Part shown: positions 2,904 to 32,786 of the stretch, piece after piece
Layout: each line of letters opens with the position of its first letter
Position numbering within the stretch: the first letter of the stretch is position 1
Assembly: GCF_963921235.1 (NCBI RefSeq)
Contig: NC_086123.1
Coordinates: forward strand, 3,968,001-4,032,000
Source: Mobula hypostoma
Taxonomy: Eukaryota
Direction of reading: 5' to 3'
Length of the DNA stretch: 64,000 bases
The notes under the pieces: model-generated
Told to the model about the DNA's origin: nothing
The model's input: the letters and a program-made list of their open reading frames with translations, nothing else
Databases searched by the model: none
Position numbers and translations under genes: made by a program

Positions 2904-5900
2904 CTGATTGTCCTGCTTCTGCTCTCAGGTAAGGAGACTCTCCTCGAGTGAGCCTTACTTTGATGTTGGTTGCTTCATGTTCTAACCTGTTTGTGTCTGT
3001 CTGTTCCTCTCTCTCCTGATGTAGCTGGTGTTGGGAGCACTTCCATTGAGTCCAGGAATCTTTATCAGTTCAATAAAATGATTAAATGTACCAACCCAGG
3101 CGTCATCCCACCACTGCAATTCAATGACTACGGCTGTTACTGTGGACCTGGTGGATCTGGGACACCAGTGGATGAGTTTGACCGGTAGGTGGACAGACGA
3201 TCTCTACAAAGCCAGTTACTATCCATTGGAGTCCAGGGACAGAGAAATGTTCTCATTCATTGTCAGAGGCAGCAGGATTGCATCTTCACTGAAGCTTTAA
3301 AATACCCCATTAAATCTCCCAATGTGAAATATGTTTCTGATGGTGGTAGTGAGTGACGATTGATGTCATGGGGTTTGCAGGCAGGTTATGGTGCCTGCTG
3401 TGGCCACACAAATACTGGCCGTGTGTCCTGGAAATAATCAGAGAGGGCAATTGCTGATGGTATATCTCACAATCTGCTTTTTGCTGTAGTTGTCAGTACT
3501 CCGACTTGAGTTAAGTTCCTGTTGGTGCAGATATGGCTGTGTATTAATTTTCTGCTTGGTGTTACTTTCAGTCCTGAAATTGGCTCCATTGAGTTGGTAA
3601 TGCGGTCTCTGTTGAAGAATTTTTTGCACCGTGGTTTTAGCGAGTTGATTTGCTGGAGCCTCTCCAGTGGTGGTTTCTGAGATGTGAGCCGTGATCAGGA
3701 TATGCCGTCTGTCCTGCAGTGATCACGAGAGACAGATCACAGATTGGTGCAGCTGGGGCTGAAGGTTTCCTACTGAGGGTGGAGGAGGACAATGACACTT
3801 GCTAGGGCTGGGAGACACTCAGTGCCTGTTGACTTCAGAGCCCCAGTGATGGTACAGAGGGTAGTGCTGGGTTTGCAGTGCCACCGGTCTGTACTGGAGC
3901 TCAGGACTGTGTTGTGGAACACACCGAGGACAGAGCAGCTGCTCCCAGGGAGGATTCTGTCCTTCTGGAGGATTGAACAGGGGGTTCGATCATGGCAGCA
4001 CAAGAGAGAACCATGACCCAGTAGCTACCTTAGTAAGGGAGCGAGGAAGGAAAGGAGAGAGGGCAACCAGCTGGTCGATCAGTCTGTTGCTTGTTGTTGG
4101 GTCTTGAACACACACAATCCATAGAAAAAGGGAAGAACTAAACATTGGTCACCTTCTCAGGTCTATTGTGGTCACGTCACTTGGAGGAATTCTTTTCCAC
4201 ATTCCCGACTGAGTCCCCACAGATCCTGATTCCACATCCCACTGTGAAGCTCCTCCCCAACTCCCTGGTACGATATGAGCCTGCTCAGTTACCCTCAGCT
4301 CAGATCACCTCCTGACTCTTAGCTCTACATGGGAAGTGTCTGACACTGGAGGCTGCTGTAACAGTGTTCTGTTCACTCTAGTCCATGAGTTTTCTACTAA
4401 ACGTTATCTGTGATTTTACAGGTGCTGCCAGACCCATGACAAGTGTTATGAAGATGCTGACAAAAAAGAGAAGTGCAGAACTGTCTTTTCACCCAAAATG
4501 ATATATTACAAGTACAGCTGCTCAAAGGGGAAAATCAAATGTACAAGTGAGTATGATCAGAGAGTGCCTCATTGTCTAATTTTTACCTCTGCTTCCATGG
4601 TCAGCAACTTTTGTCCATCCCTCATCGTCTTTGTGAAGGTGCTGGTGAGCTGCCATCTTGAACCACTGGAGTTGCCCTGGTGATGGTTCTCCCACAATGC
4701 TCTTGTGCTGAAGCTCCAGCATTCAGACCCAGTGATGATGGAGGAACGGGTTATGTTCCATGTCTGGATGGTGTGAGACTTGCAGGGACCTGTATGTGAT
4801 GCTGATCTCTGTCCCTCTAGATGGTAAAGGTTATTGGTCTGGGAGATTTGGCTGAGATACACTGGCTGCTGAATTGTACAATAGCACAGAATGCTGATAG
4901 TGGATATTGGTAGAGATCATTTCATTTGGTTTATTATTGTCGCAGGTAACAAGCCACAGTGAAAAGCTTTGTTTTTCATGCCATCCATACAGACAGAGTT
5001 GCAATGAAATCAGTTCCTTTGTCACTAGTAATGACGAGCTCCTTCTGTGTTTGGGAGCTGCACTCACCCAGGTACTGGGGCGATATCCCACTCCTGGCTG
5101 ATGGTGGAAAGGCTTCAGGCAGTAAGACATCAATCACTTCTTATGGGATGTTTAAGTTCTGACCTGCTCTTGTAAACATTCGTTAATGCATCTTGGTGAA
5201 TTATATGTGAGGGTCACCAGTGAACTCCAGTGCAAAATCTCAGAGACTCTGGCAATTCAAACACAACAACAGATTTAAGACAGAAAGTAAGCAAGAAAAC
5301 TAACAAGAGCTCAGGCAAACTATGCAGAATCCTGACAAACAGAAATCGCTCAGATACACAGAAGAACTCGGTCAGAGTTTCACCACACAAGGGCCCACAA
5401 TGACTGAGCAAAGAGGGTTTGGCCAGTTCCCCTGACATACACCCTGGAGCACATAGCAATTCAGAACAGCCCCGAGCCCAGGCAAAACATTAACCCCCAA
5501 GTCAACGACTACACTGAAAGACAGAGAAAATCCTGTGCTGATTCAGTTACCCAAATTGAATAAAAGTGATAAATGCAAGGAGAGCGTCTGATCCGATATG
5601 AGACACCTGCAACACAAAGTGAGTGAGTTCTAAGAAAAATAATTAGAATCCGGTTACTAATTTCTCAAAGGACATCAAACGGCTTTCTTGAAACAAGTCC
5701 ATAAAGGAAAAAATTCCTTTATTCCTCCAAAGAGAAAAGGTGGGATCACTAAGTGAAGGTTTAAGTAAATAGTTTCGATAAATTAAACTAAAAAGGTTAA
5801 ATTTTTTAAGATTAAAAGCTTACGAAACTGGTACCAGATTCGTAATGATAGATTAATCATAGGCTTTATATTTAGAATAGAAATTTTGGCTAATTGTACA

Positions 5901-8900
5901 GGTAAAGGAGCTCCTGATAACGAACTTAAATGAAATTGTTTCACAATTTTCAATTCCAAATCAACCCAAGATGGTCGTCCCTTTTTATCAGTCCAATATA
6001 ACCAAGAACACGCATAACGTATATTAACCGCCCAATAATACATTCTTAAATTAGGCAAAGTAAGAACTCCATCCTTTTTTAATTTTTGTAAATGACATTT
6101 TCCAATTCTTGGTCTTTTATTATTTCAAACAAAAGATGAAATAATAGAGTCAACTTGATCAAAAACTTCTTAGTTAGAAAATTAGGAATATTTTGAAATA
6201 CATATAAAAGTTTTGGTAAAATCATCATTTTAACTGCATGAATTTGACCTGCTAATGAAAGTGTAAGTGGATTCCATCTAGAAAAAAATTGCTTCATAAA
6301 ATCCACTAAGGGAACTTTATTAGCTCTATAAAGGTTTCCATAATTTTTAGTGATGATAATACTTAAATATTTAAAAGAATCCGTAACTTTTAGAGGAATG
6401 TCATCATATATAGAAGCAGAATCATTTAAAGGAAATAATTCACATTTATGCAGTTTTAACTTATATCCTGAAAACAATCCAAATTCATTGAATAATTTCA
6501 CCAAACTAGAAATAGATTCTTCGGGATTCGAAACATAAACCAAAAGATCATCCTCATAAAGGGAGATCTTATGAATAGTCCCATTTCTAGAAATTCCTTG
6601 AATATGTTTAGCTTCACAAAGTGCAATAGCCAAAGGTTCCAACATCAAATTAAATAACAGAGGACTTAACGGACATCCTTGTCTCGTACCCCGGGAAAGT
6701 TGGAAAAAGGGGGATCTACAGTTATTAGTGATAACAGTGGCAATAGGGCTTTTATATATCAATCTAATCCATTTATTAAAATTAGTACCAAAGCTAAATA
6801 TCTCTAAAACTTTAAATAGATATTTCCATTCAACTCTATCAAATGCCTTTTCGGCATCTAGAGAAACAATACACTGGGGAATCTTAGAGAGGGATGTGTA
6901 TATAATATTTAACAGTCTTCGAGTGTTAGAAAACGAATAACGCCTTTTATAAACCTGTTTGATCCTGAGAAATAATCTTAGCTAGTATATTCTCTATCCG
7001 ATTAGCCATTAATTTTGAAAGAATTTTGGCATCCACATTTAATAATGAAATATGTCTACATGAAGCACAATCAGTAGGGTCTTTATCTTTCTTAGGAATT
7101 AAAGAAATAGAAGCTTCATAAAATGTGGAAGGTAACTCTGCAAGCAGAAAAGAATCTTTAAGCATTTCCAACATATAAGGAGTAAGCAAATGTTCAAATT
7201 TTTTATAAAATCCTACAGTAAAACCATCCAATCCAAGAGCTTTACCAGATTGCATTGAAAGAATAGCTTTCTGAATTTCTCTTTCAGTAAAAGGAGCATC
7301 AAGAATTTGCTGATCTTCAACAGATATTCTAGGAAAATCAATCTTTTGTAAAGAGGCAGCTGGAAACTGAGATTTATAGAGTTGACTGTAATAGTCTTGA
7401 AAATTTTTATTAATATCTTCATAATTACAAGCTAAACTACCATCTCCCTTACGAATTTTTAAAATTTGTCTTTTAGCTCTAACTGCTTTAAGTTGAGATG
7501 ATAATAGCTTGTTACTTTTATCTCCAAACATATAAAATTGTCTTTTTAAATTAAGCAAATTTCTTTCAATAGGATAAGTTAATAGTAAATTATATTGTGA
7601 TTGAAGTTCAACCCTTTGTTTAAATAAATCAACATTAGAAGAAACTGCATAAGTATTATCTAGATCTTTAATTAGTCTTGAAATTCTATCTAACTCTATT
7701 TTTGTCTGTTTCTTGAGTTTAGCCAAATAAGATATTTTCTGACCTCGCAAATATGCTTTAAGTGTATCCCATATAATCAATTTCGAGACTTCTCCCGTAT
7801 TATTAAGAAGAAAGAAATCTTTTATCTGAATCTCTATAAAGTTAACAAAGTCCGAACTTTGTAATAAATTCTTTGGAAAGCGCCAAGGCAAGTTTACATT
7901 ACTAACATCAAAAGTTAGTAAAAAGTTAAGCTCAAAAGTTAAGTTTAAAGAAACATAGAAAATAGGTGCAGGAGTAGGCCATTCGGCCCTTCGAGCCTGC
8001 ACCGCCATTTATTATGATCATGGCTGATCATCCAACTCAGAACCCCGCCCCAGCCTTCCCTCCATACCCACTGACCCCTGTAGCCACAAGGGCCATATCT
8101 AACTCCCTCTTAAATATAGCCAATCAACTGGCCTCAACTGTTTCCTGTGGCAGAGAATTCCACAGATTCACCACTCTCTGTGTGAAGAAGTTTTTCCTAA
8201 TCTCGGTCCTAAAAGGCTTCCCCTCTATCCTCAAACTGTGACCCCTCGTTCTGGACTTCCCCAACATCGGGAACAATCTTCCTGCATCTAGCCTGTCCAA
8301 TCCCTTTAGGATCTTATACGTTTCAATCAGATCCCCCCTCAATCTTCTAAATTCCAACGAGTACAAGCCCAGTTCATCCAGTCTTTCTTCATATGAAAGT
8401 CCTGCCATCCCAGGAATCAATCTGGTGAACCTTCTTTGTACTCCCTCTATGGCAAAGATGTCTTTCCTCAGATTAGGGGACCAAAACTGCACACAATACT
8501 CCAGGTGTGGTCTCACCAAGGCCTTGTACAACTGCAGTAGTACCTCCCTGCTCCTGTACTCGAATCCTCTCGCTATAAATGCCAGCATACCATTCGCATT
8601 TTTCACCGCCTGCTGTACCTGCATGCCCACTTTCAATGACTGGTGTATAATGACACCCAGGTCTCGTTGCACCTCCCCTTTTCCTAATCGGCCACCATTC
8701 AGATAATAATCTGTTTTCCTATTTTTGCCACCAAAGTGGATAACTTCACATTTATCCACATTAAATTGCATCTGCCATGAGTTTGCCCACTCACCCAACC
8801 TATCCAAGTCACCCTGCATCCTCTTAGCATCCTCCTCACTGCTAACACTGCCACCCAGCTTCGTGTCATCCGCAAACTTGGAGATGCTGCATTTAATTCC

Positions 8901-11900
8901 CTCATCCAAGTCATTAATATATATTGTAAACAACTGGGGTCCCAGCACTGAGCCTTGCGGTACCCCACTAGTCACCGCCTGCCATTCTGAAAAGGTCCCG
9001 TTTATTCCCACTCTTTGCTTCCTGTCTGCTAACCAATTCTCCACCCACACCAATACCTTACCCCCAATACCGTGTGCTTTAAGTTTGCACACTAATCTCC
9101 CGTGTGGGACCTTGTCAAAAGCCTTTTGAAAATCCAAATATACCACATCCACTGGTTCTCCCCTATCCACTCTACTAGTTACATCCTCAAAAAATTCTAT
9201 GAGATTCGTCAGACATGATTTTCCTTTCACAAATCCATGCTGACTTTGTCCGATCATTTCACTGCTTTCCAAATGTGCTGTTATCACATCCTTGATAACT
9301 GACTCCAGCAGTTTCCCTACCACCGACATTAGGCTAACCGGTCTATAATTCCCCGGTTTCTCTCTCCCTCCTTTTTTAAAAAGTGGGGTTACATTAGCCA
9401 CCCTCCAATCCTCAGGTGCTAGTCCAGAATCTAACGAGTTTTGAAAAATTATCACTAATGCATCCACTATTTCTTGGGCTACTTCCTTAAGCACTCTAGG
9501 ATGCAGACCATCTGGCCCTGGGGATTTATCTGCCTTCAATCCCTTCAATTTACCTAACACCACTTCCCTACTAACATGTATTTCACTCAGTTCCTCCATC
9601 TCACTGGACCCTCTGTCCCTTACTATTTCTGGAAGATTATTTACGTCCTCCTTAGTGAAGACAGAACCAAAGTAATTATTCAATTGGTCTGCCATGTCCT
9701 TGCTCCCCATAATCAATTCACCTGTTTCTGTCTGCAGGGGACCTACATTTGTCTTTACCAGTCTTTTCCTTTTTACATATCTATAAATGCTTTTACAGTC
9801 CTTTTTTATGTTCCCCGCCAGTTTTCTCTCATAATCTTTTTTCCCCTTCCTAATTAAGCCCTTTGTCCTCCTCTGCTGAACTCTGAATTTCTCCCAGTCC
9901 TCAGGTGAGCCACTTTCTCCGGCTAATTTGTATGCTACTTCTTTGGAATTGATACTATCCCTAATTTCTCTTGTCAGCCACGGGTGCACTACCTTCCTTG
10001 ATTTATTCTTTTGCCAAACTGGGATGAACAATTGTTGTAGTTCATCCATGCAACCTTTAAATGTTTGCCATTGCATATCCATCGTCAATCCTTTAAGTGT
10101 CATTTGCCAGTCTATCTTAGCTAATTCACGTCTCATACCTTCAAAGTTACCCCTCTTTAAGTTCAGAACCTTTGTTTCTGAATTGACTATGTCACTCTCC
10201 ATATTAATGAAGAATTCCACCATATTATGGTCACTCTTACCCAAGGGGCCTCTCACGACAAGATCGCTAATTAACCCTTCCTCATTGCTCAAAACCCAGT
10301 CCAGAATAGCCTGCTCTCTAGTTGGTTCCTCGACATGTTGGTTCAAAAAACCATCCCGCATACATTCCAAGAAATCCTCTTCCTCAGCACCTTTACCAAT
10401 TTGGTTCACCCAGTCTACATGTAGATTGAAGTCACCCATTATAACTGCCGTTCCTTTATTGCACACATTTCTAATTTCCTGTTTAATACCATCTCCGACC
10501 TCACTACTACTGTTAGGTGGCCTGTACACAACTCCCACCAGTGTCTTCTGCCCCTTAGTGTTACGCAGCTCTACCCATATAGATTCCACATCTTCCCGGC
10601 TTATGTCCTTCCTTTCTATTGCGTTAATCTCTTCTTTAACCAGCAACGCCACCCCACCTCCCCTTCCTTCATGTCTATCCCTCCTGAATATTGAATATCC
10701 CTGAACGTTGAGCTCCCATCCCTGGTCACCCTGGAGCCATGTCTCTGTGATCCCAACTATATCATAATCATTAATAACAATCTGCACTTTCAATTCATCC
10801 ACCTTATTACGAATGCTCCTTGCATTGACACATAAAGCCTTCAGGCGCTCTTTTACAACTCTCTAAGCCCTTATACAATTATGTTGAAAAGTGGCCCTTT
10901 TTAATGCTTGCCTTTTTAAAGGTGCATGATCCGAGACTGCAATAGCATCATATTTACATTTCCGGACTTCCGACAAAAATCGGAAATCAGCCATAAAATA
11001 ATCAATTCTCGAATATTTATTATGAGCATATGAATAAAAAGAATAATCTCTGTCATTAGGGTGTAAATTTCTCCAGATTTCTATCAAACCATAATCAATT
11101 AAAAAGCAATTAATAAGTGTTGCCGAACGACTCGGAAGCTGCTGATTGGTTGAACTCTTGTCAATCAAAGGGTTTAAACAGTTGAAGTCACCTCCCATCA
11201 GCAGCATATATTCATTTAAGCCTGGTAATAAACCAAACATATTTTTTAAAAAAGGATCATCTACATTAGGTCCGTATAGATTAACCAGGACAATTTTTCT
11301 ATTACAAATTGTTCCTTTAATAATTAAAAATCTACCATTATTATCTGAGACAATGTCTTCTTGAATAAATAAAAAATCTGATTTAATAAAAATAGATACT
11401 CCCTTTGTTTTATTTTGACAAGTAGCATGGTATTGAAGGCCCTTCCATGTTTTAAAAAATCTATTTTGATCGCCCATTCTGATATGCGTTTCTTGAGCAA
11501 AAATTATATCGGGCTGGAATCGATTAAAAACTTAAATAAATGTCTTCTTTCGCTTAATAGGGTGATTCCTTCCACGTACATTCCAACTAATAACGTTTAT
11601 CTGTTTAAGTACCATTGGATATTATTCTTAAATACAACAATACACACATCCCATCGCGGGCTAATCAAAGATGGCGGAGATGAATATAACCAAATAGAAA
11701 ACGCGCATGCTCCGGAACTCCATAATGTGAAAAATACAAAAAGTGTGTGTGAAAAAAAACCACAATAAACCCCAAAATACATAAATATCCCCAAACCTCC
11801 CACCATCCCCAAAGAAGGAAATCTGACAAAAGAAAGAAAGGCCGGAACACATCCCCAAGAAAAGACATAAGAACGGAATTCCGCGTGCTGCTCAATTTAA

Positions 11901-14900
11901 ATAATAATTAAAAGTTTTTCTCCCAATTCCCCCCTCCCCATTACAACGAAAATACGTAACCTTAAGATAAGAAAGACCAGCAAAGAAAAAAAATGTTGAT
12001 ACTTAATCATTGAAAATAAACTAAGGGAATGCGAAAACAGTCTCCAAAGACGTCAGAGCAATACTATTAACCCAAAGAGTTATCATTCTTTAACTTACTA
12101 CCTTATTTAACAAAAGAACTAAAGCTAATTATCTATTACTAAACACTCCGCAATATAAGAAAAAAGCCTATATAAACTGTAAGCAAACTATCACTTAATT
12201 AATAAAGAAAAAGAAAAATAGAAACAGATAATCAAACCAGTTCACAATCTATCCGCTGTATTAATACACTCCGTATACTAAACAGTCTTTAAAAAAAAGT
12301 CATTCTTTAGTCAAACCAAGAAGATCACCTCTTCTTTAAGTAATATCAAAGGATATCTTCAGTTTACCGAAATCTTCAAAGCCTGTTTTCTTTCAGAAAA
12401 TTATTCAGAAACTCTAATATCCTTCATACATCAGCCGATTCCACAACAGAGTTGACAAAATCCGATGCCACTTGGGGATCCAAGAAGACACGAGGGGTAG
12501 AATCTTTAGGAAATAACTTTAATCTCGCTGGGTATCTCAGGGATGGAAAGAGTCTTTTTTCGTGAGCGATCTTCATGACCGATATGAATTTGATCCGTTG
12601 TTCCATAACTTCCCATGGATAATCTTCATAAAAAGGGATCTCGGAACTGTTAAATTTTAAAGCTTTCTGTTTTCTTGCACATTTTATGATTTGGTCTTTA
12701 ACTTTAAAGCGAAGAAAGTTGACTAAAATTGGTCGAGCTTTATCTGACGAAGTGAAAATTCTGTGAGCTCTTTCAATATCGGGAGGCTGAGATAGAATAT
12801 CCGGGAACAGGGATTGAAACAGGTTGGCAAAATATTCCAATAAATTCCCATTCTCGAAGCCTTCTTCAAGACCCACAATACGAATGTTATTCCTACGCAA
12901 CCTTACGTTTAAATGGACAATTTTGCGTTGAGCCTGTTCCAATCGGGTTGAAATGTCTGCAATCTGATGTTTCGATTCTTTAAACTCAGTATTCAAGGAA
13001 ACAATATTTTCCTCAATAGTCTGTAAACTCAGTCGGAACGACTTCAACTCAGAAGTGTTATTGTCTATTTCCTTGTCGAGACCCATCAACGCACGTTCCA
13101 AACGCTCAGCCCAGACAGGCATATCTTCTGATTTTACATTCGAAGTTTTTCCCTTTCCATTGCTGGGTTCAAAAAGCTGTTTTCCACTTCTTAAAGGATA
13201 CGACATAATGACCACTATTTCCCACCAAGATCCAGAAAATAAAAGTTGAATAATTCAAAGTTTAGACTGGGGAAAAGGAGGGATTAAAGGCAGCCACAAA
13301 ATTTATGTATTACTCCATTGAGCTGCAGGCGGAAGTCCCACAATAGGGTATTTTAACAGACTCCTGCATAGAAACATGGAGCTTAGTAAAATAGAGGGCT
13401 ATGGGTAACTCTAGGTAATATTTAAGGTAAGGACATGTTCTGCAGAGATTTATGGGCCGAGGGCCTGTATTGTGCTGTAGAGTTTCTATGTTTCTATGTT
13501 CTCTGTAGCTGCATCAATATGTAGTGACCTGGTTAAGTCCTCAGAGATATTGACACCCAGGCACTTGAAATTGCTCATTCTCTCCACTCCTGATAGATAC
13601 AGAAATAAACTGAATGGCAGTAATTACATATATGTTTATTAAATAGTTAAATTAAATACGTAGTACAAAAAAAGGAAATAAAAAAGTAATGGGGTAGTGT
13701 TCATAAGTTTAATGTCCATTTAGAAATCAGATGGCAGAGAGAAAGAAGCTGGTCTTGACGTGTGTGCCTTCAAGCTTCTGTACCTCCTTCCTGACGGTAA
13801 CAATGAGAAGAGGGCATGTACTGGGTGGTGAGGGTCCTTAATACTGGACAACTCCTTCCTGAGGCAGCTTATGGGACATAAAGGCTAAGCAATCCAAGGA
13901 AGACTATACACCTGAGAATTATCAGAGGCATAGATAAAATAAACAATCACAGCCCTTTTCCAAGGCAGGAAAGTCTAAAACTAGAGGTCGAGGTTTAACG
14001 TGGGAGTAGAAAAAGATTTAAAAGGAACAACTTGTTCACACAGAGGCTGCTGGGTATGTAGAAGGTGCAAAGGAGATGGGAACAATTACAATATTTCAAA
14101 GATAGTTGGAAAGCTTCAGAGGGATCTGGGCCAAGTGCAGGCAGATGGGATAGCATAGAAAGACAGTGGGTCAGCATGGATGAGTTGGGCCGAAGAGCCT
14201 GGCTCAGAGCTGCAAAACCTTTACGACTCTATGAACGTGAAAGATGGCTGAATTACACTCCTTATTTGAAGATGGTTATTGTCTGACACGTGTGTGTTGT
14301 CAATGTTACTCACCAGCTAGTGGTCAGGGCCCAGATATTGCTGGATCATATGCAGAGAGCAAATTATGAACTGAGCATTATTGATGAGTAAGTACTGTCT
14401 GGTAGCACTGACACCATCAAAAATCATTTGAAATAGTAGATTGAGTAAATATTTGGCTCTGAAAGCCTGCTGCACTATTTGTCAAGATATAGGTTTATCT
14501 TCTTGCTCAACAATTTTTCCTGACTTATTTCAATATTCCCAGATTCCTCCAATTTATCAAATTTAATCAGCTTCAGTTTTGAGTGATTTCATGACATCCA
14601 CAGCCCTCTGGCACAGGATCTTCCCCCAGTTTGAACCCTCAATGGTTTGCCCTTAATCTGCGCCAGTGACCCCTGATTCTATTTCCCATCAGTACAGGAA
14701 ACACCTTCTCCATATCTGTCCTGTGATCCCTGCTGTGGTTTCAAAATTCGCCCACAGAAAATGGATTCAGATGAATAAAAGGAGGAATATTTTTGCTTCA
14801 CTTCATCTCAGCATTTTACAGAATGCAATAGAAATGTTGTGACCAGTTTGTTTGCAGCAGGATCCCAATGGAGCCATGACCAGATAAAATATCTAAGCTG

Positions 14901-15631: not shown

Positions 15632-15962
15632 GAGGTCGATCTGACCATGTGGTTATGATTTTTCTTGACTTTATCTAACAAATACTTTCCTTCCAAATTG
15701 TGTCATCTGTTTTATTTCCAGGAACTCAAACATCTTTGAACTCCATATTAACTATGATACTATAATCAATAATCTGATTTAAATCCAACACCCCTTATCC
15801 TGTCTTACATTATTTGTGCCACTCAGAAAGATAAAGATCTTCATCACTTTGATCTTTCTCCCAATGAAAGCACATACTGGTTACTTTCTAAACCAAAATC
15901 TGAAAGTATCATGTCAAATTTGCCGATATTTTCACTAAAACAAATCCCATTGAACAACCATG

Positions 15963-15968
15963 AATAAA
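15963..15968 (+). terminator. Candidate poly(A) signal, PLA2 copy A
   Basis: AATAAA about 330 nt after the stop, shared with copy B. Confidence 0.45.
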
Positions 15969-17321
15969 TTGAATTGGGATGATAATCATTCCCTCAGCCC
16001 AGGCTTTCCTTAAAGCCTCAGCTGTGGAACCTGAGGAAAAATCTGTTCACATCAAGGTGATGCAAACTTTGCGATGGCCCACAACAGATGCTCAGTTGGT
16101 TCCTTACAGGACGCCTAAACACAATAATGATTGGAAGCTGCACTTGGAAATCCAGTTGTGATTATACTCGGAGATTGTTTGCAATGACGTTGCTGGTGCC
16201 ACTCATAATATTAAGGTGGTGGGCATGTATCTTCTATAATCAATTAAACCTGATTTGAGAGCATTGAAACATGCCTGGCGTCTCATTCTTGTATCACAAC
16301 ACATGTACCACAATGAGGAAAACCAGTCAAAGGACAGGAAGCACAGGCTGGGACTTCTCCTGGAGTGTTTCCATCCCACAGGAACAACTCAGACAAAACC
16401 TTCACCTATTCCATTACCACCCCTCCCCACTCTGCACCACCCATGTGCTTATAAACAAGTAGACCACCAAATGAATTTCCAACACTGAATCAGAAGTAAG
16501 ACGGCAGTGATCACATTAATGAGGTTGTACTACAGGGTCAGAATCAGAATCAGGTTAACATCACCGGCATATGTCATAACTTTACGTCAGCAGTACAATG
16601 CCATACATGATAAATAAATATAGAGAATTAACCTGAGTGGCATTTGGTATCTATATGTCTGTTAAATAGTTAAGGTAAAACAAGTAGTACAAAATACTGT
16701 AACAGAAATAACAAAGTAGTGAGTTAGTGTTCATGGGTTCAATGTCCATTGAGGAATCGGATGGCAGAGGGGAAGAAGCTGTTCCTGAATCGCTGAGTGT
16801 GTGCCTTCAGGCTTCTGTATCTCCTTCCCGACAGTAACAGCATGAAGAGGGCATGTCCTGGGTGGTGGGCATCCTCAATGGTGGATGCTGCCTTCTCTCA
16901 AACTAGCGGGCACAGAATTAAGACAAGAGGGGAAAGCGTTAAAGGGGACCTTAGACGCCCCTCAGCAAATGGGGAAAATTGGAAGTGGTCAGGCTGTTTA
17001 ACGCAATGAGTCTGGTGTCTGCCCCATTGGAGTAGGTCAAACATCAACATCTTTCCAAATTCCAGGCAGGGTGCCCTGTTCTGAAGTCAGTTCACCATTC
17101 CCAAATTCCCATGAAGCAATTATCAGGTATTGCATTGCAAAGTTAACAAATTTCACGACATAGGCCAGTGATATTAAACCTGATTCTGGTTGTGAAGCAT
17201 CTGATGCCTGTCACCTGGTACTTTCATGGAAGAGAACAGAAGTAGGTGACTTCGAGAGCTTGTGCAAGGATTCACTCCTGTTTTAGCTTCTGACTGCTGT
17301 GGAATTGATGGTTACAAATAG

Positions 17322-22170: not shown

Positions 22171-25100
22171 AAAGTTGAAGCACTGGGTTTTTTGGCTGAC
22201 TTGTGAGAAAATGTTGATTTACAATGGGATGAAATGAGGGTGAAGGTGGGAGTTGTCGGGGTGTTGGGTTGGTGTTTGAGGTATTGGGCTGAACAGGTCA
22301 TAAGCTATATTTCCTGCTTCACCCCAGCTCCTGAGCACAATGTGAACCTCGACTAAATGTGGTCAAACGTGTAAGAGGAATATTGTCACATAATGGCAGC
22401 TGTAGTGATGATGGAGCCTCATTTTCTGTGCCCTAAAGGTTAAGGAACTTTCAGGTGTGAACGGGAAGAGTCATGGAGGGATGGAGAGGGAGGTGGTGCT
22501 CTTCCTGGGGATTGGTGACTATGGTGGTGACCCCAGTCGATAAAAGAACCCCTCCCACCCTCCTTCCTCCAGCTCCACTGTCCAGAGAGTGTTTGGGGAC
22601 AGGTCCAACAAATATCACCCACTGAAACCTAAATTTCACCCATCTCAGCATTAGCACAAAACTGACTGATCAAAACTTGACCCTTGCAACTTTATTGCCA
22701 AATTGAGGGAGGGTATCACAAAGGGGCAGTTTTACAGCCCTGTTGGGGCATAAAGAGACCACGGGGCACCAGTCTGCACATCAGTTAACAGAGCATTAAG
22801 CATCCAAATGTGTGACCACACACACTCCACACCCTAGGACACGGGGAGGCAGAAACAAAACCATGTCAGGAGTGAACGTGATGATATCGGGTATACCCAT
22901 TTTATTGTCCGAAACAAGCCAAGATCTTAAGACTTGTACGTAGCTATTAAATTTCAAAGTTCAAAGTATATATATGCACTATATACAAGCCTGAGATTCA
23001 TTTTCTTGCGGGCATACTCAGAAAATCCAACAACCACAATAGAACGAAAGAAGGGCTTCATCAAGTCCTTCGCTCACATCCACTGTGATGAAGTATTTTG
23101 AGAGGTTGACCATGACATCTGACATATATACTGTACGACGTACGTCCGTGATAATAAACCTGATTCTGATTCAAGAACTGCGAAGGGGCACTGGAAACAA
23201 CCCAAATCATACTGGAGTTGCACCAAAGAAGAGCAATTCATTGCTGACTGTGAGATCCCAGAGAGAGAGTTGTTTCTCCTGTCGACACTGAAGACGGCTG
23301 TGGTAAGGAAACTGGATTTGCCTAAATAAGCACGGTTTAATCCCAGGAAGACAAGATGGCAGGAGTGGAAACCAAATAACAACATCTGTGTCAGTGCTAA
23401 CCTAGTGCAGTCCCTTCAGGAACCATAGAGAGTGTAGCCACATGATTCAACCTTTTCCCAGTCCCACACGCAGTGTTGGGGCACCAGACCATCCACTAAC
23501 GATGAACGTTCACTTCGTCCCTCTGATTCTCCATTGCTGATGACGAATGGGAAGGATCAGGCAGACCAGGCCAGGAGAAGACCAGGGAAGTGAAGACATT
23601 ATGTTGACCAAGGTGGCACAAGGAACAACAGGAGAAATATTCTGATGTGAGACACAACTCTGCTGATACTTGAAGCAGTCCATCTACGTGATCGGAATGA
23701 ACTTGCCCATCCTGGATGGGAGAGCTGACTGATGCTCTGGAACCTATTCAATGTTTCTGATCTGGATCACCGTAGACTGACACTCTGAGTCCTGATGGAC
23801 CGGATGTTCCACCATGGAACCTGGTAAATTAATGACTGTGGTTGTGTCACCTCCCTCTCCATTCTTCCATGTCACTTCCCCTCAATACTCGCAGAATTAC
23901 TTCATCTGCAATACACAAAAGGAAATGTGGTTCTTCACTCCCTGCAGTTTCCATTCTATGATGCAGCTCTGGGCTTCCAAACCTCAGAACGTCCCCTTTC
24001 CCTACCCCAACCTACCACTGTATGTTTGACCGTGTCTGGGTGATGTTCAAAATTTCTACTCGGGAGCAGGGACAGACAGCTGAACTTGAAATCTGCCAAC
24101 CAACGGTGTCGGGCAACTCATTCACAGCCCCCTCATTTGCCTTTTTATTCCATTACAATCCTTTGTTCTCAGGCTGCAGATTATTGCTATCTGACAAACT
24201 CAGCAATTCAAATTACATTTTTAGTTAGTGTTCCAGCTCTTAGTAGTTTTATTGCTTATTTGCATGTGATGTGTAAGAAGTGATCACTACATCTGTGCAT
24301 TCGCATTGTACCAGACAAAGACTGCTCCTTACTGTAACTAAGTTAAAATAAGTAGTAGTTTTCCCAACAAACTCTTGCTCCAGAAGAGCAGTTTGAACAG
24401 GAGTATTGACCATTTACGTTTGGTTCAGCTTGTCAGAAAGAGAAAATAAGCCCATTCTTATTGAGGAAAACAACATTTATGATTCCTCCTAATTGTCCCA
24501 AACTATTTGGCAGAATTACCAAAACAGTTTTGTCTATTTTTAAAGCCTTGAGCCAATATTCCAAATTCATGTGAGTTTTATTATATCTTCCTGAATTGTA
24601 CATGACCCAGTTCATGTTTTGTTTTCACCAACTATAGTTCAGATAACTAACAAGGGATTGGAATATCATAGTTAAAGGAAAGGTAAAACACCTCCCAACT
24701 TTAGCTCATCACGAGCAAAGCAACTTTGTCTAAGATTAAAAAATCATAATTTTCCTTAGGTCACAGTCTATTTCATCAAACATGGAGTGAATTCAAAATC
24801 CCTATCTTGCTCTTCATCTCTGTTATTATCTGGCTCTATCCGACCTTCATTCTCACTCTCTCTGAATCACAGGATCTTAAAAGCTCCCAAGCTTCAAGGA
24901 ACATTTTTGAAACTCAGCCTCATCTGCTCTCTTTTCCCTCCACACTCACTCTCTCTTTCTCTCCCTCTCCTCTCTCTCTCTCTGTCTCTCTTTCTTCCTC
25001 TCTCTTTCATTCTCTCTTTACTCTCACCAAATCACAGGATCTCAAAATTTGGCAAATCTCTTTTGAAACTCATGGATCACTCACCCACTTTCTATCAATT

Positions 25101-25674
25101 CAGAACATGAAAAAAGTGGTCAAGATGGCGCCAGCGTACGACGTTCCCATAGTCGACATCTTCCAGATGACAAGCAAAAAGCTTTTTCACTTCTTTTACG
25201 TATGTTTTCACCTTAAAAACGTTTCTGGAGGGATAGAGCCTGCAACTTACAGCCTTCAGCACCGACGATCCCACTCCGGGTTGTCCCACATCTTCCCCAT
25301 CACAGTCTCAGCCATTCCCTCAGCAGATTCTGGATCAGAGCCGAGCATCCCTCCACCAGGCAGATACTCCGGTGACCCTAATGGCTGCAGGAAGTTTATG
25401 ACCCAGTGTGAGCTGACTTTCCAAGCCCAGCCAGGTCGGTTCAGTGATGATGTGCGTACGTGGTGAATCACTCGGACTCCATTCACCTGTTCAATGCTCT
25501 GTGAGAACAAGGTTCCCCCTACAGCTCAGTCCTTCCACCAACTCGTGGTTGAGTTCAAGAGAGCGTTTGGTCTTCCGGTGCAGGGTTAGGAGGCAGCTCA
25601 CCGAATGGTAGGGCACAGAAGAGTGCGGTGGAGCAAAGGGATCCATAATTCATTGAAAGTGGCCTCATTGAAAG

Positions 25675-26200
25675 TGGAGAATGGACGGGAAAGCACAGAG
25701 GAACATCTGGAGAAATTTCTGAAACGCCCGTTCGCTGCTGTCTTTACTGTGCGGTCAGGAATCTTTCGGAGGCTAGGCCTCAATATCCCTGTCCTTGCCT
25801 GCTTTTGGCGACCTGGCGACCGAGAAGGAGGTCGAATCATTCGGACAGAGATGGTGCTCAGTACTCAGTGTCGGAGAGCTGATCGGAGCTCGAAATTTTC
25901 GGATGACTCAGAGTCGGACCGTGGTCGGGCATGAAAGGGAGAGTTTTTCTTCCTTCTCCCCTCTGCGTGAGATGTGGGACATTTGGGAGACTTTGAACTT
26001 TACTGTGCTCATGGACATCTCATCAAGTTATGCTATTATTGCACTGTTTGTAACTATATGTTATAATTATGTGGTTTTGTCAGTTTTTTTCAGTCTTGGT
26101 TTGTCCTGTGTTTTGTGATATTACACCGGAGGAAATAATGTATCATTTCTTAATGCATACATTACTAAATGACAAGAAGAGAGGGCTACATGTCTTCATA
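25675..26200 (+). mobile_element. Non-autonomous interspersed element, 5' end deleted
   Basis: Same family as 2672-2903 and 36743-37240. Confidence 0.7.
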
Positions 26201-26835
26201 AGCAATCATCATAAAATGGATACACCCAGTATCATCACATACATGTACTGCCTGTGACTGTGTCCTAGCGTACAGAGTGTGGGTGGTCACACATGAGATC
26301 GCTCAGAACTATGTTAGATTAATGTGAAGAATGGGGCCCCAAGGGTCTATTTATGCCCCTGAGGGTCTGCACAGCAGCACCAATGTAAAATCATCCCTCG
26401 CTGTAGCAATGAAGTTGGAAAGGGCACAGTGTGTTCAGTATCTGCAGAGAGTGTGCAGAAATTAATGCATTTTGTTTTTCAGTACAGGGGGTTCTGTTGA
26501 TTCAGTCCCCAAACACTCTCTGGAAAGTGGAGCTGGAGGAAGGAGGGTGGGAGGGGTTCTTTTATTGACTGGGGACACCACCATAGTCACCAATCCCCAG
26601 GAAGAGCATCACCTCATGGAAATCACAGGGCAAGTCCCACAGCGACTTGTCTCATTTTCAGAGGTGGTCACCATATCCTCTCCATACTCTAAAACCAATT
26701 ACCGAGAGTTCGTGCCGTGACAATTCCAGCCCATCACCCCTGTCGTGGACTCTGTTTAGTGTCTATGTTTCAATCAGTGAGACCCATCATGATCACATTT
26801 GGGTTAGTTATGCACACTTAAAATAGAACACCGTC

Positions 26836-26976
26836 TCACACACAAACACACACACACACACGTAAATTGACACACACTCAAACACATACGTGGACACATA
26901 CACACACATACATGTAAATTAACACATGTGGACACACAGTCGTGGACACGCACGCACACACACACACACACACACT
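26836..26976 (+). repeat. Imperfect (CA)n microsatellite upstream of PLA2-B
   Basis: CA-rich run. Confidence 0.9.
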
Positions 26977-27029
26977 GAGAAGAGCCGGAAGCAGTCAGGA
27001 TTGGCTCTGTCTCTCCAGCTCAGTCAAAT

Positions 27030-27100
27030 AGAGACCAGCTGTATCAACATGAGAGTTTGTCTTTATCTTATCCATGTTATCAGCTCCCAATATATAATCC
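27030..27100 (+). promoter_or_regulatory. PLA2 copy B proximal promoter
   Basis: TATATAA at 27091-27097, 62 nt before the ATG; three reverse GATAA motifs within 27063-27082; E-box CAGCTG at 27036-27041. Confidence 0.6.
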
Positions 27101-27152
27101 AGGGACTGAACCTCACAAGTGTGATTTCCAGGACAGGGAAGAGCAAACGACA

Positions 27153-27186
27153 ATGTTGGGCCTGATTGTCCTGCTTCTGCTCTCAG
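27153..27186 (+). CDS. PLA2G1B: PLA2 copy B exon 1 (signal peptide)
   Basis: ATG..TCAG|gtaagg, [11 protein letters not shown], 34 nt. Confidence 0.92.
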
Positions 27187-30100
27187 GTAAGGAGACTCTC
27201 CTCGAGTGAGCCTTACTTTGATGTTGGTTGCTTCATGTTCTAACCTGTTTGTGTCTGTCTGTTCCTCTCTCTCCTGATGTAGCTGGTGCTGGGAGCACTT
27301 CCATTCAGTTCAGGAACCTCATTCAGTTCGGTGAATTGATTAAATGTGCCAACCCAAGCATCACTTCACCACTGCAATTCAATAACTACGGCTGTTACTG
27401 TGGAACTGGTGGATCTGGGACACCAGTGGATGACCTTGACCGGTAGGTGGACAGACGATCTCTACAGAGCCAGTTACCATCCATTGGAGTCCAGGGACAG
27501 AGAAATGTTCTCATTCATTGTCAGAGGCAGCAGGATTGCATCTTCATTGAAGCTTCAAAATACCCCATTAAATCTCCCAATGTGAAATATGTTTCTGATG
27601 GTGGCAGTGAGTGACAATTGATGTCATGGGGTTCGCAGCCAGGTTATGGTGCCTACTGTGGCCACACAAATACTGGCCGTGTGTCCTGGAAATAATCAGA
27701 GAGGGCAATTGCTGATGGTATATCTCACAATCTGCTTTTTGCTGTAGTTGTCAGTACTCCGACTTGAGTTAAATTTCCGTTGGTGCAGATATGGCCGTGT
27801 ATAAATTTTCTGCTTGGTGTCACTTTCAGTCCTGAAATTGGCTCCATTGAGTTGGTAATGCGGTCTCTGTTGAAGAATTTTTTGCACCGTGGTTTTAGCG
27901 AGTTGATTTGCTGGAGCCTCTCCAGTGGTGGTTTCTGAGATGTGAGCCGTGATCAGGATATGCCGTCTGTCCTGCAGTGATCACGAGAGACAGATCACAG
28001 ATTGGTGCAGCTGGGGCTGAAGGTTTCCTGCTGAGGGTGGGGGAGGACAATGACACTTGCTAGGGCTGGGAGACACTCAGTGCCTGTTGACTTCAGAGCC
28101 CCAGTGATGGTACAGAGGGTAGTGCTGGGTTTGCAGTGCCACCGGTCTGTACTGGAGTTCAGGACTGTGTAGTGGAACACACCGAGGACAGAGCAGCTGC
28201 TCCCAGGGAGGATTCTGTCCTTCTGGAGGATTGAACAGGGGGTTCGATCATGGCAGCACAAGAGAGAACCATGACCCAGTAGCTACCTTAGTAAGGGAGC
28301 GAGGAAGGGAAGGAGAGAGGGCAACCAGCTGGTCGATCAGTCTGTTGCTTGTTGTTGGGTCTTGAACACACACAATCCATAGAAAAAGGGAAAAAATAAG
28401 CATTGGTCGCCTTCTCAGGTCTATTGTGGTCATGTCACTTGGTGGAATTCTTTTCCACATTCCCGTCTGATTCCCCACAGATCCTGATTCCACATCCCAC
28501 TGTGAAGCTCCTCCCCTACTCCCTGGTACGATATGAGCCTGCTCAGTTACCCTCAGCTCAGATCACCTCCTGACTCTTAGCTCTACATGGGAAGTGTCTG
28601 ACACTGGAGGCTGCTGTAACAGTGTTCTGTTAACTCAAGTCCATGAGTTTTCTACTAAACGTTATCTGTGATTTTACAGGTGCTGCCAGACCCATGACAA
28701 GTGTTATGAAGATGCTGACAAAAAAGAGAAGTGCAGAACTGTCTTTTCACCCAAAATGATACATTACAATTACAGCTGCTCAAAGGGGAAAATCGAATGT
28801 ACAAGTGAGTATGATCAGAGAGTGCCTCATTGTCTAATTTTTACCTCTGCTTCCATGGTCAGCAACTTTTGTCCATCCCTCATCGTCTTTGTGAAGGTGC
28901 TGGTGAGCTGCCATCTTGAACCACTGGAGTTGCCCTGGTGATGGTTCTCCCACAATGCTCTTGTGCTGAAGCTCCAGCATTCAGACCCAGTGATGATGGA
29001 GGAACGGGTTATGTTCCATGTCTGGATGGTAAAAGTTTTTTCTCCCAATTCCCCCCTCCCCATTACAACGAAAATACGTAACCTTAAGATAAGAAAGACC
29101 AGCAAAGAAAAAAATGTTGATACTTAATCATTGAAAATAAACTAAGGGAATGCGAAAACAGTCTCCAAAGACGTCAGAGCAATACTATAAACCAAAGAGT
29201 TTAATCTCTAAAAAGAGAAAAGCAGCGCCATCATTCTTTAACTTACTACCTTATTTAACAAAAGAACCAAAGCTAATTATCTATTACTAAACACACCGCA
29301 ATATAAGAAAAAAGCCTATATAAACTGTAAGCAAACTATCACTTAATTAATAAAGAAAAAGAAAAATAGAAACAGATAATCAAACCAGTTCACAATCTAT
29401 CCGCTGTATTAATACACTCCGTATACTAAACAGTCTTTAAAAAAAGTCATTCTTTAGTCAAACCAGGAAGATCACCTCTTCTTTAAGTAATATCAAAGGA
29501 TATCTTCAGTTTACCGAAATCTTCAAAGCCTGTTTTCTTTCAGAAAATTATTCAGAAACTCTAATATCCTTCATACATCAGCCGATTCCACGACAGAGTT
29601 GACAAAATCCGATGCCACTTGGGGATCCAAGAAGACACGAGGGGTAGAATCTTTAGGAAATAACTTTAATCTCGCTGGGTATCTCAGGGATGGAAAGAGT
29701 CTTTTTGCGTGAGCGATCTTCATGACCGATATGAATTTGATCCGTTGTTCCATAACTTCCCATGGATAATCTTCATAAAAACGGATCTCGGAACCGTTAA
29801 ATTTTAAAACTTTCTGTTTTCTTTCACATTTTATGATTTGGTCTTTAACTTTAAAGCGAAGAATGTTGACTAAAATTGGTCGAGCTTTATCTGACGAAGT
29901 GAAAATTCTGTGAGCTCTTTCAATATCGGGAGGCTGAGATAGAATATCCGGGAACAGGAATTGAAACAGGTTGGCAAAATAATCCAATAAATTCCCATTC
30001 TCGGAGCCTTCTCGAAGACCCACAATACGAATGTTATTCCTACGCAACCTTAAGTCTAAATCGACAATTTTGCGTTGAGCCTGTTCCAATCGGGTTGAAA

Positions 30101-32786
30101 TATCTGCAATCTGACATTTCGATTCTTTAAACTCAGTATTCAAGGAAACAATATTTTCCTCAATAGTCTGTAAACTCTGTCGGAACGACTTCAACTCAGA
30201 AGTGTTATTGTCTATTTCCTTGTCGAGACCCATCAACGCACGTTCCAAACGCTCAGCCCAGACAGGCATATCTTCTGATTTTACATTCGAAGTTTTTCCC
30301 TTTCCATTGCTGGGTTCAAAAAGCTGTTTTCCACTTCTTAAAGGATACGGCATAATGACCACTATTTCCCACCAAGATCCAGAAAATAAAAGTTGAATAA
30401 TTCAAAGTTTAGACTGGGGAAAAGGAGGAATTAAAGGCAGCCACAAAATTTATGTATTACTCCATTGAGCTGCAGGCGGAAGTCCCACAATAGGGTATTT
30501 TAACAGACTCCTGCATAGAAACATGGAGCTTAGAAAAATAGAGGGCTATGGGTAACTCTAGGTAATATTTAAGGTAAGGACATGTTCTGCAGAGATTTAT
30601 GGGCCGGGGGCCTGTATTGTGCTGTAGGGTTTCTATGTTTCTATGTTTCTATGTTCTCTGTAGCTGCATCAATATGTAGTGACCTGGTTAAGTCCTCAGA
30701 GATATTGACACCCAGGCACTTGAAATTGCTCATTCTCTCCACTCCTGATAGATACAGAAATAAACTGAATGGCAGTAATTACATATATGTTTATTAAATA
30801 GTTAAATTAAATACGTAGTACAAAAAAAGGAAATAAAAAAGTAATGGGGTAGTGTTCATAAGTTTAATGTCCATTTAGAAATCAGATGGCAGAGAGAAAG
30901 AAGCTGGTCTTGACGTGTGTGCCTTCAAGCTTCTGTACCTTCTTCCTGACGGTAACAATGAGAAGAGGGCATGTACTGGGTGGTGAGGGTCCTTAATACT
31001 GGACAACTCCTTCCTGAGGCAGCTTATGGAACATAAAGTCTAAGCAATCCAAGGAAGACTATACACCTGAGAATTATGAGAGGCATAGATAAAATAAACA
31101 ATCACAGCCCTTTTCCAAGGCAGGAAGGTCTAAAACTAGAGGTCTGGGTTTAACGTGGGAGTAGAAAAAGATTTAAAAGGAACAACTTGTTCACACAGAG
31201 GCTGCTGGGTATGTAGAAGGTGCAAAGCAGATGGGAACAATTACAATATTTCAAAGATAGTTGGAAAGCTTCAGAGGGATCTGGGCCAAGTGCAGGCAGA
31301 TGGGATAGCATAGAAAGACAGTGGGTCAGCATGGATGAGTTGGGCCGAAGAGCCTGGCTCAGAGCTGCAAAACCTTTACGACTCTATGAACGTGAAAGAT
31401 GGCTGAATTACGCTCCTTATTTGAAGATGGTTATTGTCTGACACGTGTGTGTTGTCAATGTTACTCACCAGCTAGTGGTCAGGGCCCAGATATTGCTGGA
31501 TCATATGCAGAGAGCAAATTATGAACTGAGCATTATTGATGAGTAAGTACTGTCTGGTAGCACTGACACCATCAAAAATCATTTGAAATAGTAGATTGAG
31601 TAAATATTTGGCTCTGAAAGCCTGCTGCACTATTTGTCAAGATATAGGTTTATCTTCTTGCTCAACAATTTTTCCTGACTTATTTCAATATTCCCAGATT
31701 CCTCCAATTTATCAATTTCAATCAGCTTCAGTTTTGAGTGAATTCATGACATCCACAGCCCTCTGGCACAGGATCTTCCCCCAGTTTGAACCCTCAACTG
31801 TTTGCCCTTAATCTGCGCCAGTGACCCCTGATTCTATTTCCCATCAGTACAGGAAACACCCTCTCCATATCTGTCCTGTGATCCCTGCTGTGGTTTCAAA
31901 ATTCAACCCACAGAAAATGGATTCAGATGAATGAAAGGAGGAATATTTTTGCTTCACTTCATCTCAGCATTTTACAGAATGCAATAGAAATGTTGTGACC
32001 AGTTTGTTTGCAGCAGGATCCCAATGGAACCATGACCAGATAAATTATCTAAGCTGATATTTGCAGGACTATTCTGATCACATTAAAAGAGGTTTCTCCC
32101 AAGCTCTTTTGTTACATACAATCTCCTCACCAGACAGATGAAAAATATGCTCAGTTTAACAGTCAGGAGAGAGAGAGATGGGTCACTTCTCCCTCAGGAG
32201 CACAGTGGAATATCACTCTTCCAGTTTGTGTTAATGTCACTGCCGTGGGACTGAAACCTCAGAGTCAGAGGCAAGATCCAAGACTGCTGCTTGGGGCCAC
32301 ATCAGTGGTGAAGGGCTGGGGGTCACCAGGGACTTTTCTAGAATTCTAGATTCAGCTATGATTGTGGTGTAGATCTTCACAGAATTTGTTATTCTGATGT
32401 CAATGCAAGTCTGACATCAGTTTAAAAGGATCCATTGACTCTAGAAATGATAAGGTCATCACAATGAAATTAAAAACCCAGATTACAATTAGTAATTTAA
32501 ATGATTTACAGAACATTTATATAAAGATTAGAATGTTGCACATAATATATAGATGGAAGTTGAATTATCAAAATATATTAAAATTTAAAATTATCTTTCA
32601 TTCTTTCATAATCCAAGGCAAATACTGTATCATTAATATAATAGATTATTTTGAATATGTTTCCTTTCAGGTAAAAGTCACTGCGAGAAGTTTATCTGTG
32701 AATGTGATCGAAAGGCGTCCATCTGCTTCTCGAAAGCAAAATACAACCCTAAGAATAAAGGCATCAGTAAATCTCGCTGCAAATAG
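27153..32786 (+). CDS. PLA2G1B: Group I secreted phospholipase A2, copy B; intact 4-exon gene, 144 aa
   Basis: Exons 27153-27186, 27283-27442, 28680-28804, 32671-32786, all GT-AG, total 435 nt: [144 protein letters not shown]. Signal peptide, Arg-ending propeptide, Ca2+ loop, His48/Asp49/Tyr52/Asp99, 14 Cys including the group I C11-C77 pair. Symbol denotes family likeness; orthology not tested. Confidence 0.95.
27283..27442 (+). CDS. PLA2G1B: PLA2 copy B exon 2
   Basis: 160 nt, ag|CT..CG|gt, [19 protein letters not shown]. Confidence 0.96.
28680..28804 (+). CDS. PLA2G1B: PLA2 copy B exon 3
   Basis: 125 nt, CCQTHDKCY catalytic motif. Confidence 0.96.
29031..30486 (-). mobile_element. L1 5' remnant with open ORF1 (29571-30362) in PLA2-B intron 3
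   Basis: Paralogous to 11910-13339; ORF2 absent. Confidence 0.92.
32671..32786 (+). CDS. PLA2G1B: PLA2 copy B exon 4
   Basis: 116 nt, [13 protein letters not shown] motif, ends TAG. Confidence 0.95.

Follow-up and report, generated by a model that had tools for sequence, protein, structure and literature searches.

The window studied here is a stretch of 64,000 nucleotides from the devil ray Mobula hypostoma, and it contains two four-exon genes for secreted phospholipase A2 (PLA2), copies A and B, both on the + strand. Parts of their coding exons differ far more than the introns between them, a contrast that an earlier note on this DNA attributed to accelerated evolution of the kind known from snake venoms. 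The explanation that we favour, with moderate confidence, is that the excess consists of older variants reshuffled among the paralogues of a PLA2 cluster, in a clade that appears to be confined to batoids, and that diversity on the membrane-binding face of the enzyme has likely been selected.

In snakes, exons that outpace their introns serve as the textbook evidence for adaptive evolution of toxins. The same signature is now found in a filter-feeding ray, in a PLA2 clade common to skates and sawfish, and here it can be traced largely to the exchange of older variants among paralogues: a pairwise contrast between exons and introns should not be taken as positive selection after duplication without the whole gene family. 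This batoid-specific secreted PLA2 family, which has expanded repeatedly, is a new, non-venom instance of the known pattern of conserved introns and hypervariable exons. Literature searches on elasmobranch PLA2 expansion and on Mobula PLA2 yielded no paper describing an expansion of secreted PLA2 genes in batoids.

The exon-intron structure proposed by the earlier note is reproduced for both copies, and its guess of a probable ray was right: the protein of copy B is 100% identical to the NCBI protein P0001 of M. hypostoma, encoded on a 39.5-Mb chromosome record. Throughout, P-numbers are labels of database protein matches, and X-numbers are labels of sequencing runs (Logan contigs). The features of the two copies are the following, where ORF stands for open reading frame and LINE for long interspersed nuclear element.

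1..1344, + strand: block upstream of copy A, duplicated at 24324-25666 with 99.5% identity (6/1343 differences; self-BLAST).
1345..2897, + strand: A-specific 5' region, without homology to B's 25667-27155 (alignment, ORFs, tblastn with a LINE ORF).
2901..2928, + strand: copy A exon 1 remnant, signal-peptide codons 3-11, without ATG at the homologous site (0/28 differences from B).
2929..3024, + strand: intron 1 of copy A, GT..AG, 96 bp without a difference from B (0/96).
3025..3184, + strand: copy A exon 2, end of the signal peptide, propeptide ending in Arg and mature residues 1-43; the divergence hotspot.
3185..4421, + strand: copy A intron 2, 1237 bp (31/1237 differences from B).
4422..4546, + strand: copy A exon 3, His48/Asp49 region (3/125 differences from B).
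4773..11908, - strand: nested LINE elements inserted into intron 3 of copy A only, about 7.1 kb (self-BLAST break, ORFs).
11909..16454, + strand: distal part of intron 3 of copy A, with exon 4 and the 3' flank; the duplicate is at 29030-33610 (97.5-97.8% identity).
15513..15631, + strand: coding part of exon 4 in copy A.
17322..17470: gap in the assembly, within the spacer that separates the two genes.
24324..33610, + strand: copy B duplicated segment (self-BLAST, contig depth).
27153..27186, + strand: coding part of exon 1 in copy B, which opens with the ATG at 27153.
27283..27442, + strand: copy B exon 2 (exact RNA contigs).
28680..28804, + strand: copy B exon 3 (exact RNA contig).
32671..33338, + strand: copy B exon 4, coding 32671-32786, then 3'UTR to about 33338 (exact RNA contigs).

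The self-comparison aligns the copies in three co-linear blocks, of which the middle one pairs 2898-4772 with 27156-29030 at 97.0% identity. Over all blocks the non-coding divergence is 124/5987, or 2.07%, and it is uneven: 0.45% in the upstream block, where differences are about five times fewer than in the gene body, 0/124 in exon 1 and intron 1, and 2-3% elsewhere. Exon 2, with 21 differences in 160 bp and 16 amino-acid changes, is the most diverged window of its size in the approximately 7.7 kb that can be aligned, the next one having 11 differences (Fisher p = 9e-11). Exon 4 has 6 substitutions and a 3-bp indel in 116-119 bp, and its first 20 bp or so hold 5 of these differences together with the GGT codon of copy A. 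The excess is confined to these two places; exon 3 diverges at the intron rate. Over the coding sequences there are 26 non-synonymous changes and 4 synonymous ones (Nei-Gojobori), in addition to one codon indel; if the 426 coding sites changed at the non-coding rate, 30 or more differences would occur with a probability of 1e-8. The amino-acid changes fall at positions -8, -2, -1, 3, 6, 7, 8, 12, 15-18, 24, 31, 40, 41, 71, 73, 82, 86-88, 91 and 119, and both copies retain all 14 Cys, Tyr28/Gly30/Gly32, His48, Asp49, Tyr52, Tyr73 and Asp99, as read from an alignment of B to bovine and ovine PLA2G1B and, for A, from the family alignment. Thus every count in the earlier note, from the identical first intron to the unchanged catalytic residues, is recovered.

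The contrast is not peculiar to this pair. Between copy B and the gene of Mobula birostris type, exon 2 differs at 26/160 sites and the introns at 47/1044 (4.5%), with p = 4e-7, so that the claim of coding exons outpacing introns holds in both comparisons; the exon 2 of this second species was rebuilt from contig tables, and translates exactly to the M. birostris protein P0005. Similarly, the exon 3 of P0003 type differs at 12/122 sites, and the collapsed contigs of intron 2 at only 7/755. The 5' end of the genes, with exon 1 and the 96-bp intron 1 (27115-27282 in B, 2901-3024 in A), is almost invariant: in the second Mobula species, a single base in 160 is changed there. For intron 2 the difference between the Mobula species is 3-6%, so that the signal region and intron 1 are conserved far better than all of their surroundings.

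If the differences between A and B were mutations that occurred after the duplication, as a strict reading of the earlier note would have it, they should be private to one copy or the other. M. hypostoma has at least five further PLA2 genes on the same chromosome (P0003, P0004, P0006, P0016 and P0037), and related sets exist in M. birostris, Hypanus sabinus, Hemitrygon akajei and Pristis pectinata. In the family alignment, 20 of the 24 amino-acid differences have both of their states in other paralogues or ray species; only four states are private, E7, L8 and N73 of copy B and K82 of copy A. The rate of private non-synonymous change, 4/338, does not exceed the non-coding rate. Moreover, the sharing goes by blocks. 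The exon 2 of P0004 equals that of A over its first 22 residues, and that of B over the remaining 32 except for one private change, with a breakpoint supported at p = 8e-5; the beginning of exon 4 in A (GNYHCAK) is of the P0003 and P0004 type, and that of B (KSHCEK) agrees with P0005 of M. birostris. The four-gamete test, applied to the five close paralogues, fails for 33 of 66 informative column pairs. At the protein level, these patterns indicate reticulate, block-wise sharing of variants. The motif SITS is found in four M. hypostoma genes and RKAS..PKNK in three, a sharing within the species that, compared with the putative orthologues, looks like the signature of concerted evolution. As the note had it, this is a multi-copy family of group I secreted PLA2, but the differences between A and B are for the most part not new.

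The rates, computed from pairwise counts, can be read in the same light. Over the whole coding sequence, the ratio omega of non-synonymous (dN) to synonymous (dS) divergence is 1.73 between A and B, and the test of non-synonymous versus synonymous change gives p = 0.36. For exon 2, dN and dS are 0.161 and 0.085 between A and B, 0.193 and 0.143 between B and the P0005 type, and 0.161 and 0.178 between A and the P0005 type: the ratios range from 0.9 to 1.9, and are not significantly above 1, the value that the earlier note expected to see exceeded. The synonymous divergence is itself high. With intron divergences of 0.021 between A and B and of 0.045 (the 47/1044 above) between B and the other species, exon-2 dS is 3-4 times that of the introns, with p = 0.045 and p = 0.03 respectively. 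Pure positive selection does not predict a raised dS; an older history of the exon, or introns that were homogenised, does. The earlier note had itself set against its proposal a conversion from an old paralogue with dS in proportion, and the data agree with that clause, exon-2 dS of 0.085-0.18 exceeding intron divergence of 0.02-0.045.

The two copies are in very different states. Homology between them starts two codons after the ATG of B: upstream, A-specific sequence stands in place of B's promoter, 5'UTR and first two codons (ATG TTG), and at least 1319-1844 of that sequence is the C-terminal part of a LINE reverse-transcriptase ORF, found with tblastn. Copy B encodes an intact, spliced and strongly expressed pre-pro-enzyme whose propeptide ends in Arg. 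In run X9, RNA of the same species, contigs lie on exons only and match B exactly, at depths of 200-660. Exon 2 is covered by exact contigs at depth 205-273 with the GT..AG joint 27441->28679, exon 3 by an exact contig at depth 330 whose loose end continues into a B-type exon 4, and exon 4 with its 3'UTR by exact contigs over 32687-33338 at a depth of about 255, with none beyond. This strong expression is seen in one of the five RNA runs that were checked, and B is not seen in X10. The same run X9 also contains, over 28679-28800, a second paralogue, whose exon 3-4 junction reads as in P0003, at about one third of the contig depth of B. For copy A, no A-type letters occur at the diagnostic sites in X9; of the sampled words of its exon 2, a fraction of 0.14 occurs in X9 and 0.00 in the RNA runs X13 and X17, in which this exon alone was looked for; and no A-like protein is among the database matches. 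Copy A is a 5'-truncated and apparently silent copy, probably inactive, with exons 2-4 still open. Pseudogene decay of A was considered as a source of the exon excess and rejected, since K82 is the single amino-acid change private to A and a neutrally decaying copy would differ by about 2%, not 13%.

Both proteins belong to the family Pfam PF00068, with scores of 121.4 bits for A and 121.7 bits for B (cut-off 32.1). The catalytic columns of D49 type (His48, Asp49, Tyr52, Tyr73, Asp99 and the Ca2+ loop) are invariant in B and its paralogues with respect to the bovine and ovine enzyme, which indicates, as a prediction from sequence, that copy B is a Ca2+-dependent enzyme with His48/Asp49 chemistry. 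The 14 Cys of A and B include the Cys11-Cys77 pair, and by homology the disulfides should pair as in the known enzymes; the propeptide, ..SIESR|NLYQF in A and ..SIQFR|NLIQF in B, would be cleaved after its Arg. The pancreatic loop (residues 62-66, five residues in group IB), missing from an elapid group IA sequence, is present and one residue shorter than in bovine PLA2. The best solved matches in the PDB are bovine pro-PLA2, the closest, and bovine PLA2, and the mature proteins are basic, with pI 8.8-9.0.

With the pancreatic enzyme PLA2G1B (group IB), the ray genes share the four exons, the 14 Cys with the Cys11-Cys77 pair, His48/Asp49/Tyr52/Asp99, the Ca2+ loop and the propeptide ending in Arg. 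They differ from it by the shorter pancreatic loop, by the replacement of Trp3 by Tyr or Ile, and by their position in a separate clade, rays having kept a canonical orthologue (P0037, P0069, P0099). The maximum-likelihood tree places A and B outside the PLA2G1B orthologue clade, in a batoid-only clade with support 100/96 and seven skate and fifteen ray and sawfish sequences; the sister clade is the canonical PLA2G1B of shark, ray and bony vertebrates, and holds the ray's own P0037. We thus regard the clade of A and B, as far as this tree can tell, as batoid-only and sister to the pancreatic gene. The N-terminus of the purified pancreatic PLA2 of a stingray (Dasyatis) looks, by eye, nearer to the canonical ray gene than to the A/B clade (PMC3050761), and the family is not equated here with the main pancreatic enzyme. 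The membrane anchors of pancreatic secreted PLA2 are Trp3, Arg6, Leu19/Met20 and Lys116-122 (PMC9862071), and the variable positions 3, 6, 7, 15-18, 31 and 119 lie at or beside them. The statement of the earlier note that many of the changed positions are on the interfacial surface is supported: the changes are on the N-terminal helix and the segment that follows it, close to the anchor residues.

These observations can be assembled into the following scenario. Copies A and B would belong to a cluster on one M. hypostoma chromosome that comprises no fewer than six or seven genes for secreted PLA2, and in which recent duplication, ongoing gene conversion, or both, would keep the non-coding DNA of close paralogues very similar. 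The mature-peptide exons would hold a pool of older, mostly non-synonymous variants that are swapped between copies in short blocks, and the excess seen in exon 2 and where exon 4 begins would represent different draws of A and B on that pool, rather than mutations since they separated. Copy A would have lost its promoter and start codon to LINE-derived sequence. The variants most likely persist by selection for diversity on the membrane-binding face, at residues 3, 6 and 7 and in the segment 12-24. A selection that keeps mature-peptide diversity at the level of the family is plausible but unproven, and of the adaptively diversifying family described in the earlier note there remains a multigene family with conserved introns, in which diversification is plausible; adaptive substitution after the duplication is unsupported. 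As for function, one may suppose a secreted digestive, mucosal or antimicrobial lipase with varied interfacial specificity, and not a sting venom.

Some points weigh against this scenario. The sharing of variants is established at the protein level and with one exon 2 rebuilt from contig tables, and convergent substitution at a few favoured sites would remain compatible with it. For the C-terminal type of exon 2 in A (GVIP, D24, EF), the annotated M. hypostoma genes offer no donor. With so many fixed residues in the protein, an exon-2 dN that equals or exceeds dS speaks for positive selection at some sites. Because rare variants are lost from Logan contigs, missing A-type RNA is no proof of silence; the RNA evidence covers five runs, X10, X13 and X17 among them, with X9 as the only one that gave matches; and the depths used below to count copies are soft evidence.

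The strict form of the first proposal, in which a recent tandem duplication was followed by new point substitutions under positive selection in exon 2, as proposed for snake-venom PLA2 genes, would account for the 13% of exon 2 against the 2% of non-coding DNA, for 26 non-synonymous against 4 synonymous changes with omega 1.7-1.9, for catalytic and structural residues left untouched, and for changes near the anchors Trp3, Arg6, Leu19 and Met20 (PMC9862071). We nevertheless think it unlikely: private states exist at only 4 of the 24 differences, P0004 is a paralogue recombinant between A and B, the excess of non-synonymous change has p = 0.36, exon-2 dS is 3-4 times the intron divergence, and copy A lacks a promoter and, at the position homologous to that in B, an ATG, with no RNA that carries its exon 2. 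A neutral mosaic, in which gene conversion alone homogenises introns and flanks or pastes old tracts into exons while diversity is not selected for and constraint on the surface is merely relaxed, is one that we would call doubtful: it fits a dN/dS near 1 (0.9-1.9) in the three exon-2 comparisons, the raised exon-2 dS, the uneven non-coding divergence (0.45% in block 1, 0/124 in exon 1 and intron 1, 2-3% elsewhere) and the reticulate pattern of variants. However, neutral conversion should homogenise exons as much as introns, and the contrast between the two recurs, in the exon 3 of P0003 type (12/122 versus 7/755 in intron 2) and between B and the M. birostris type; this counts against it. In addition, about 40% of the residues are invariant, and an average omega near or above 1 then implies a higher omega, in excess of 1, at the variable sites.

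A more elaborate proposal keeps selection and exchange together and gives a role to copies without a promoter: a PLA2 arsenal specific to rays and skates, whose membrane face is kept diverse by selection and by the shuffling of exon blocks, with promoter-less copies such as A serving as silent donor cassettes. The comparison is with the antibody genes of birds, where pseudogene V donors would be the counterparts of copy A. The pattern of conserved introns and hypervariable exons would then have a case outside venoms, with microbial or dietary membranes as the probable targets, and we consider the proposal improbable in this complete form.

The earlier note also suggested a venom, and a sting-venom or skin-toxin arsenal has some points in its favour: transcriptomes of stingray venom tissue hold many D49 PLA2 transcripts (PMC8781517), the mature proteins are basic (pI 8.8-9.0), and a conserved signal region and intron 1 stand beside a variable mature peptide. 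The same study of venom tissue found minimal PLA2 activity in the venom and suspected an epidermal, non-venom origin of the transcripts (Kirchhoff et al. 2021, PMC8781517). Those transcripts resemble the A/B family in encoding D49-type secreted PLA2s of Myliobatiformes with several isoforms per species, but that study found no matching activity in the venom. The 18 best-scoring matches, which cover all ray and sawfish members of the family, all come from genome annotations, and none from transcriptome assemblies. Skates have an expansion of the clade too, and sawfish possess it, which makes a sting-venom role unlikely. Neither skates nor sawfish are known to have a sting; M. hypostoma is also described as lacking one, a point on which a literature search gave nothing usable. 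The venom arsenal is thus unsupported, and we rate it as very unlikely.

Like the PLA2 families of snake venoms (viperid group II, elapid group I), the ray genes are clustered or tandem paralogues whose introns and signal region are far more conserved than the mature exons, and in which non-synonymous change is at or above synonymous change. The non-coding divergence between A and B is about one quarter of exon dS (0.021 versus 0.085), and Nakashima and colleagues, in 1993, reportedly obtained the same ratio in snake PLA2 genes. Both systems vary in the segment between helix 1 and the Ca2+ loop, which is singled out in snake PLA2s as an exchanged segment, and to which the ray block at residues 12-24 corresponds (PMC2711939). 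Unlike the snake families, the ray genes have no venom gland or venom context, their dN/dS is not significantly greater than 1, most of the A/B differences are common to other paralogues, and one member of the pair, copy A, lacks a start codon and RNA support. The segment switching described in 2008 and 2009 is similar in that short exon blocks differ as units between paralogues with similar introns. It is unlike the ray case in that each ray block has an identifiable counterpart in a sister gene; gene conversion or recombination is then enough, and no switch to unrelated sequence is needed.

All of this supposes that A and B are two genes, and an assembly gap between them invites the opposite suspicion: that they are two haplotypes of one gene, misplaced in tandem around the gap. 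Their identity of 97-99.5% would agree with this, as would the local heterozygosity, which could be high, given flank contigs of X1 with about 11 mismatches to the assembly in 900 bp. The gap lies 1.7 kb past the stop codon of A and 9.7 kb before the ATG of B, and lies clear of all exons and introns. The similarity of the two copies stops 867 bp before it and starts again 6.85 kb after it, and self-BLAST and contig-end comparison detect no shared sequence between the contig ends on its two sides; the scaffold join determines only the spacing and adjacency of the copies. The copies also differ by the 7.1-kb LINE insertion and by the replaced 1.5-kb 5' region.

The depth of the contigs tells the same story, with the reservation that depths here are per-contig means of Logan contigs and not copy numbers, and that in X1 several copies are merged into mosaic contigs. 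Word depth inside the duplicated segment is 26-35 in run X1, 20-29 in X3 and 9.6-15.5 in X5, a run of the second species, against 11.7-13.1 (exact contigs), 5.5-9.3 and 3.7-3.9 in the respective flanks; in these three runs from two species, it falls by a factor of 2-4 just beyond 33610, where the duplicated segment ends. Contigs specific to B have depths of 13.2 (exon 3) and 12.2 (B-type exon 4) in X1, equal to the single-copy figure of 11.7-13.1, and B is therefore a full-depth copy. A false duplication should show copy-specific sequence at half depth and collapsed sequence at flank depth, and neither X1, X3 nor X5 has this signature. The haplotype artefact, which we regard as highly improbable, is rejected on the contig ends and the depths, and A and B are real copies; there is good but soft evidence that the duplicated segment is present in more than two copies in both species.

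Just past the duplicated segment, at 33611-34900, DNA contigs of the same species (X1) show about 11 differences from the assembly per 900 bp, at a depth of 1.3-1.5 times single copy, which could reflect high local heterozygosity or a further diverged copy elsewhere. Outside the window, the annotated Hypanus sabinus protein P0002, of 223 amino acids, joins exons 2-3 of one PLA2 unit to another unit. Either the gene model reads through from one tandem gene into the next, or this is a genuine PLA2 with two domains.

The insertion in intron 3 of copy A contains an uninterrupted LINE endonuclease/reverse-transcriptase ORF of 892 amino acids (8124-10802, - strand), nested within another LINE, which may belong to a recently active element. 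Fragments related to it lie at 1319-1844, 18720-21034, 37180-39100, 44951-45279 and 48275-48846. The next annotated gene, from about 40300 onward on the + strand and about 7.5 kb downstream of copy B, encodes a 580-amino-acid protein of MFS/sugar-transporter type (PF00083, PF07690). A repeat at 35800-36999 is extremely abundant, with a summed contig depth of 1e5-4e6 in the DNA runs of both species and a high depth in the RNA run too; it includes sequence that also forms a palindrome at 21951-22124. Finally, a tandem array at 60334-61118 consists of about 29 units with a period of 27 bp and 86-92% identity.

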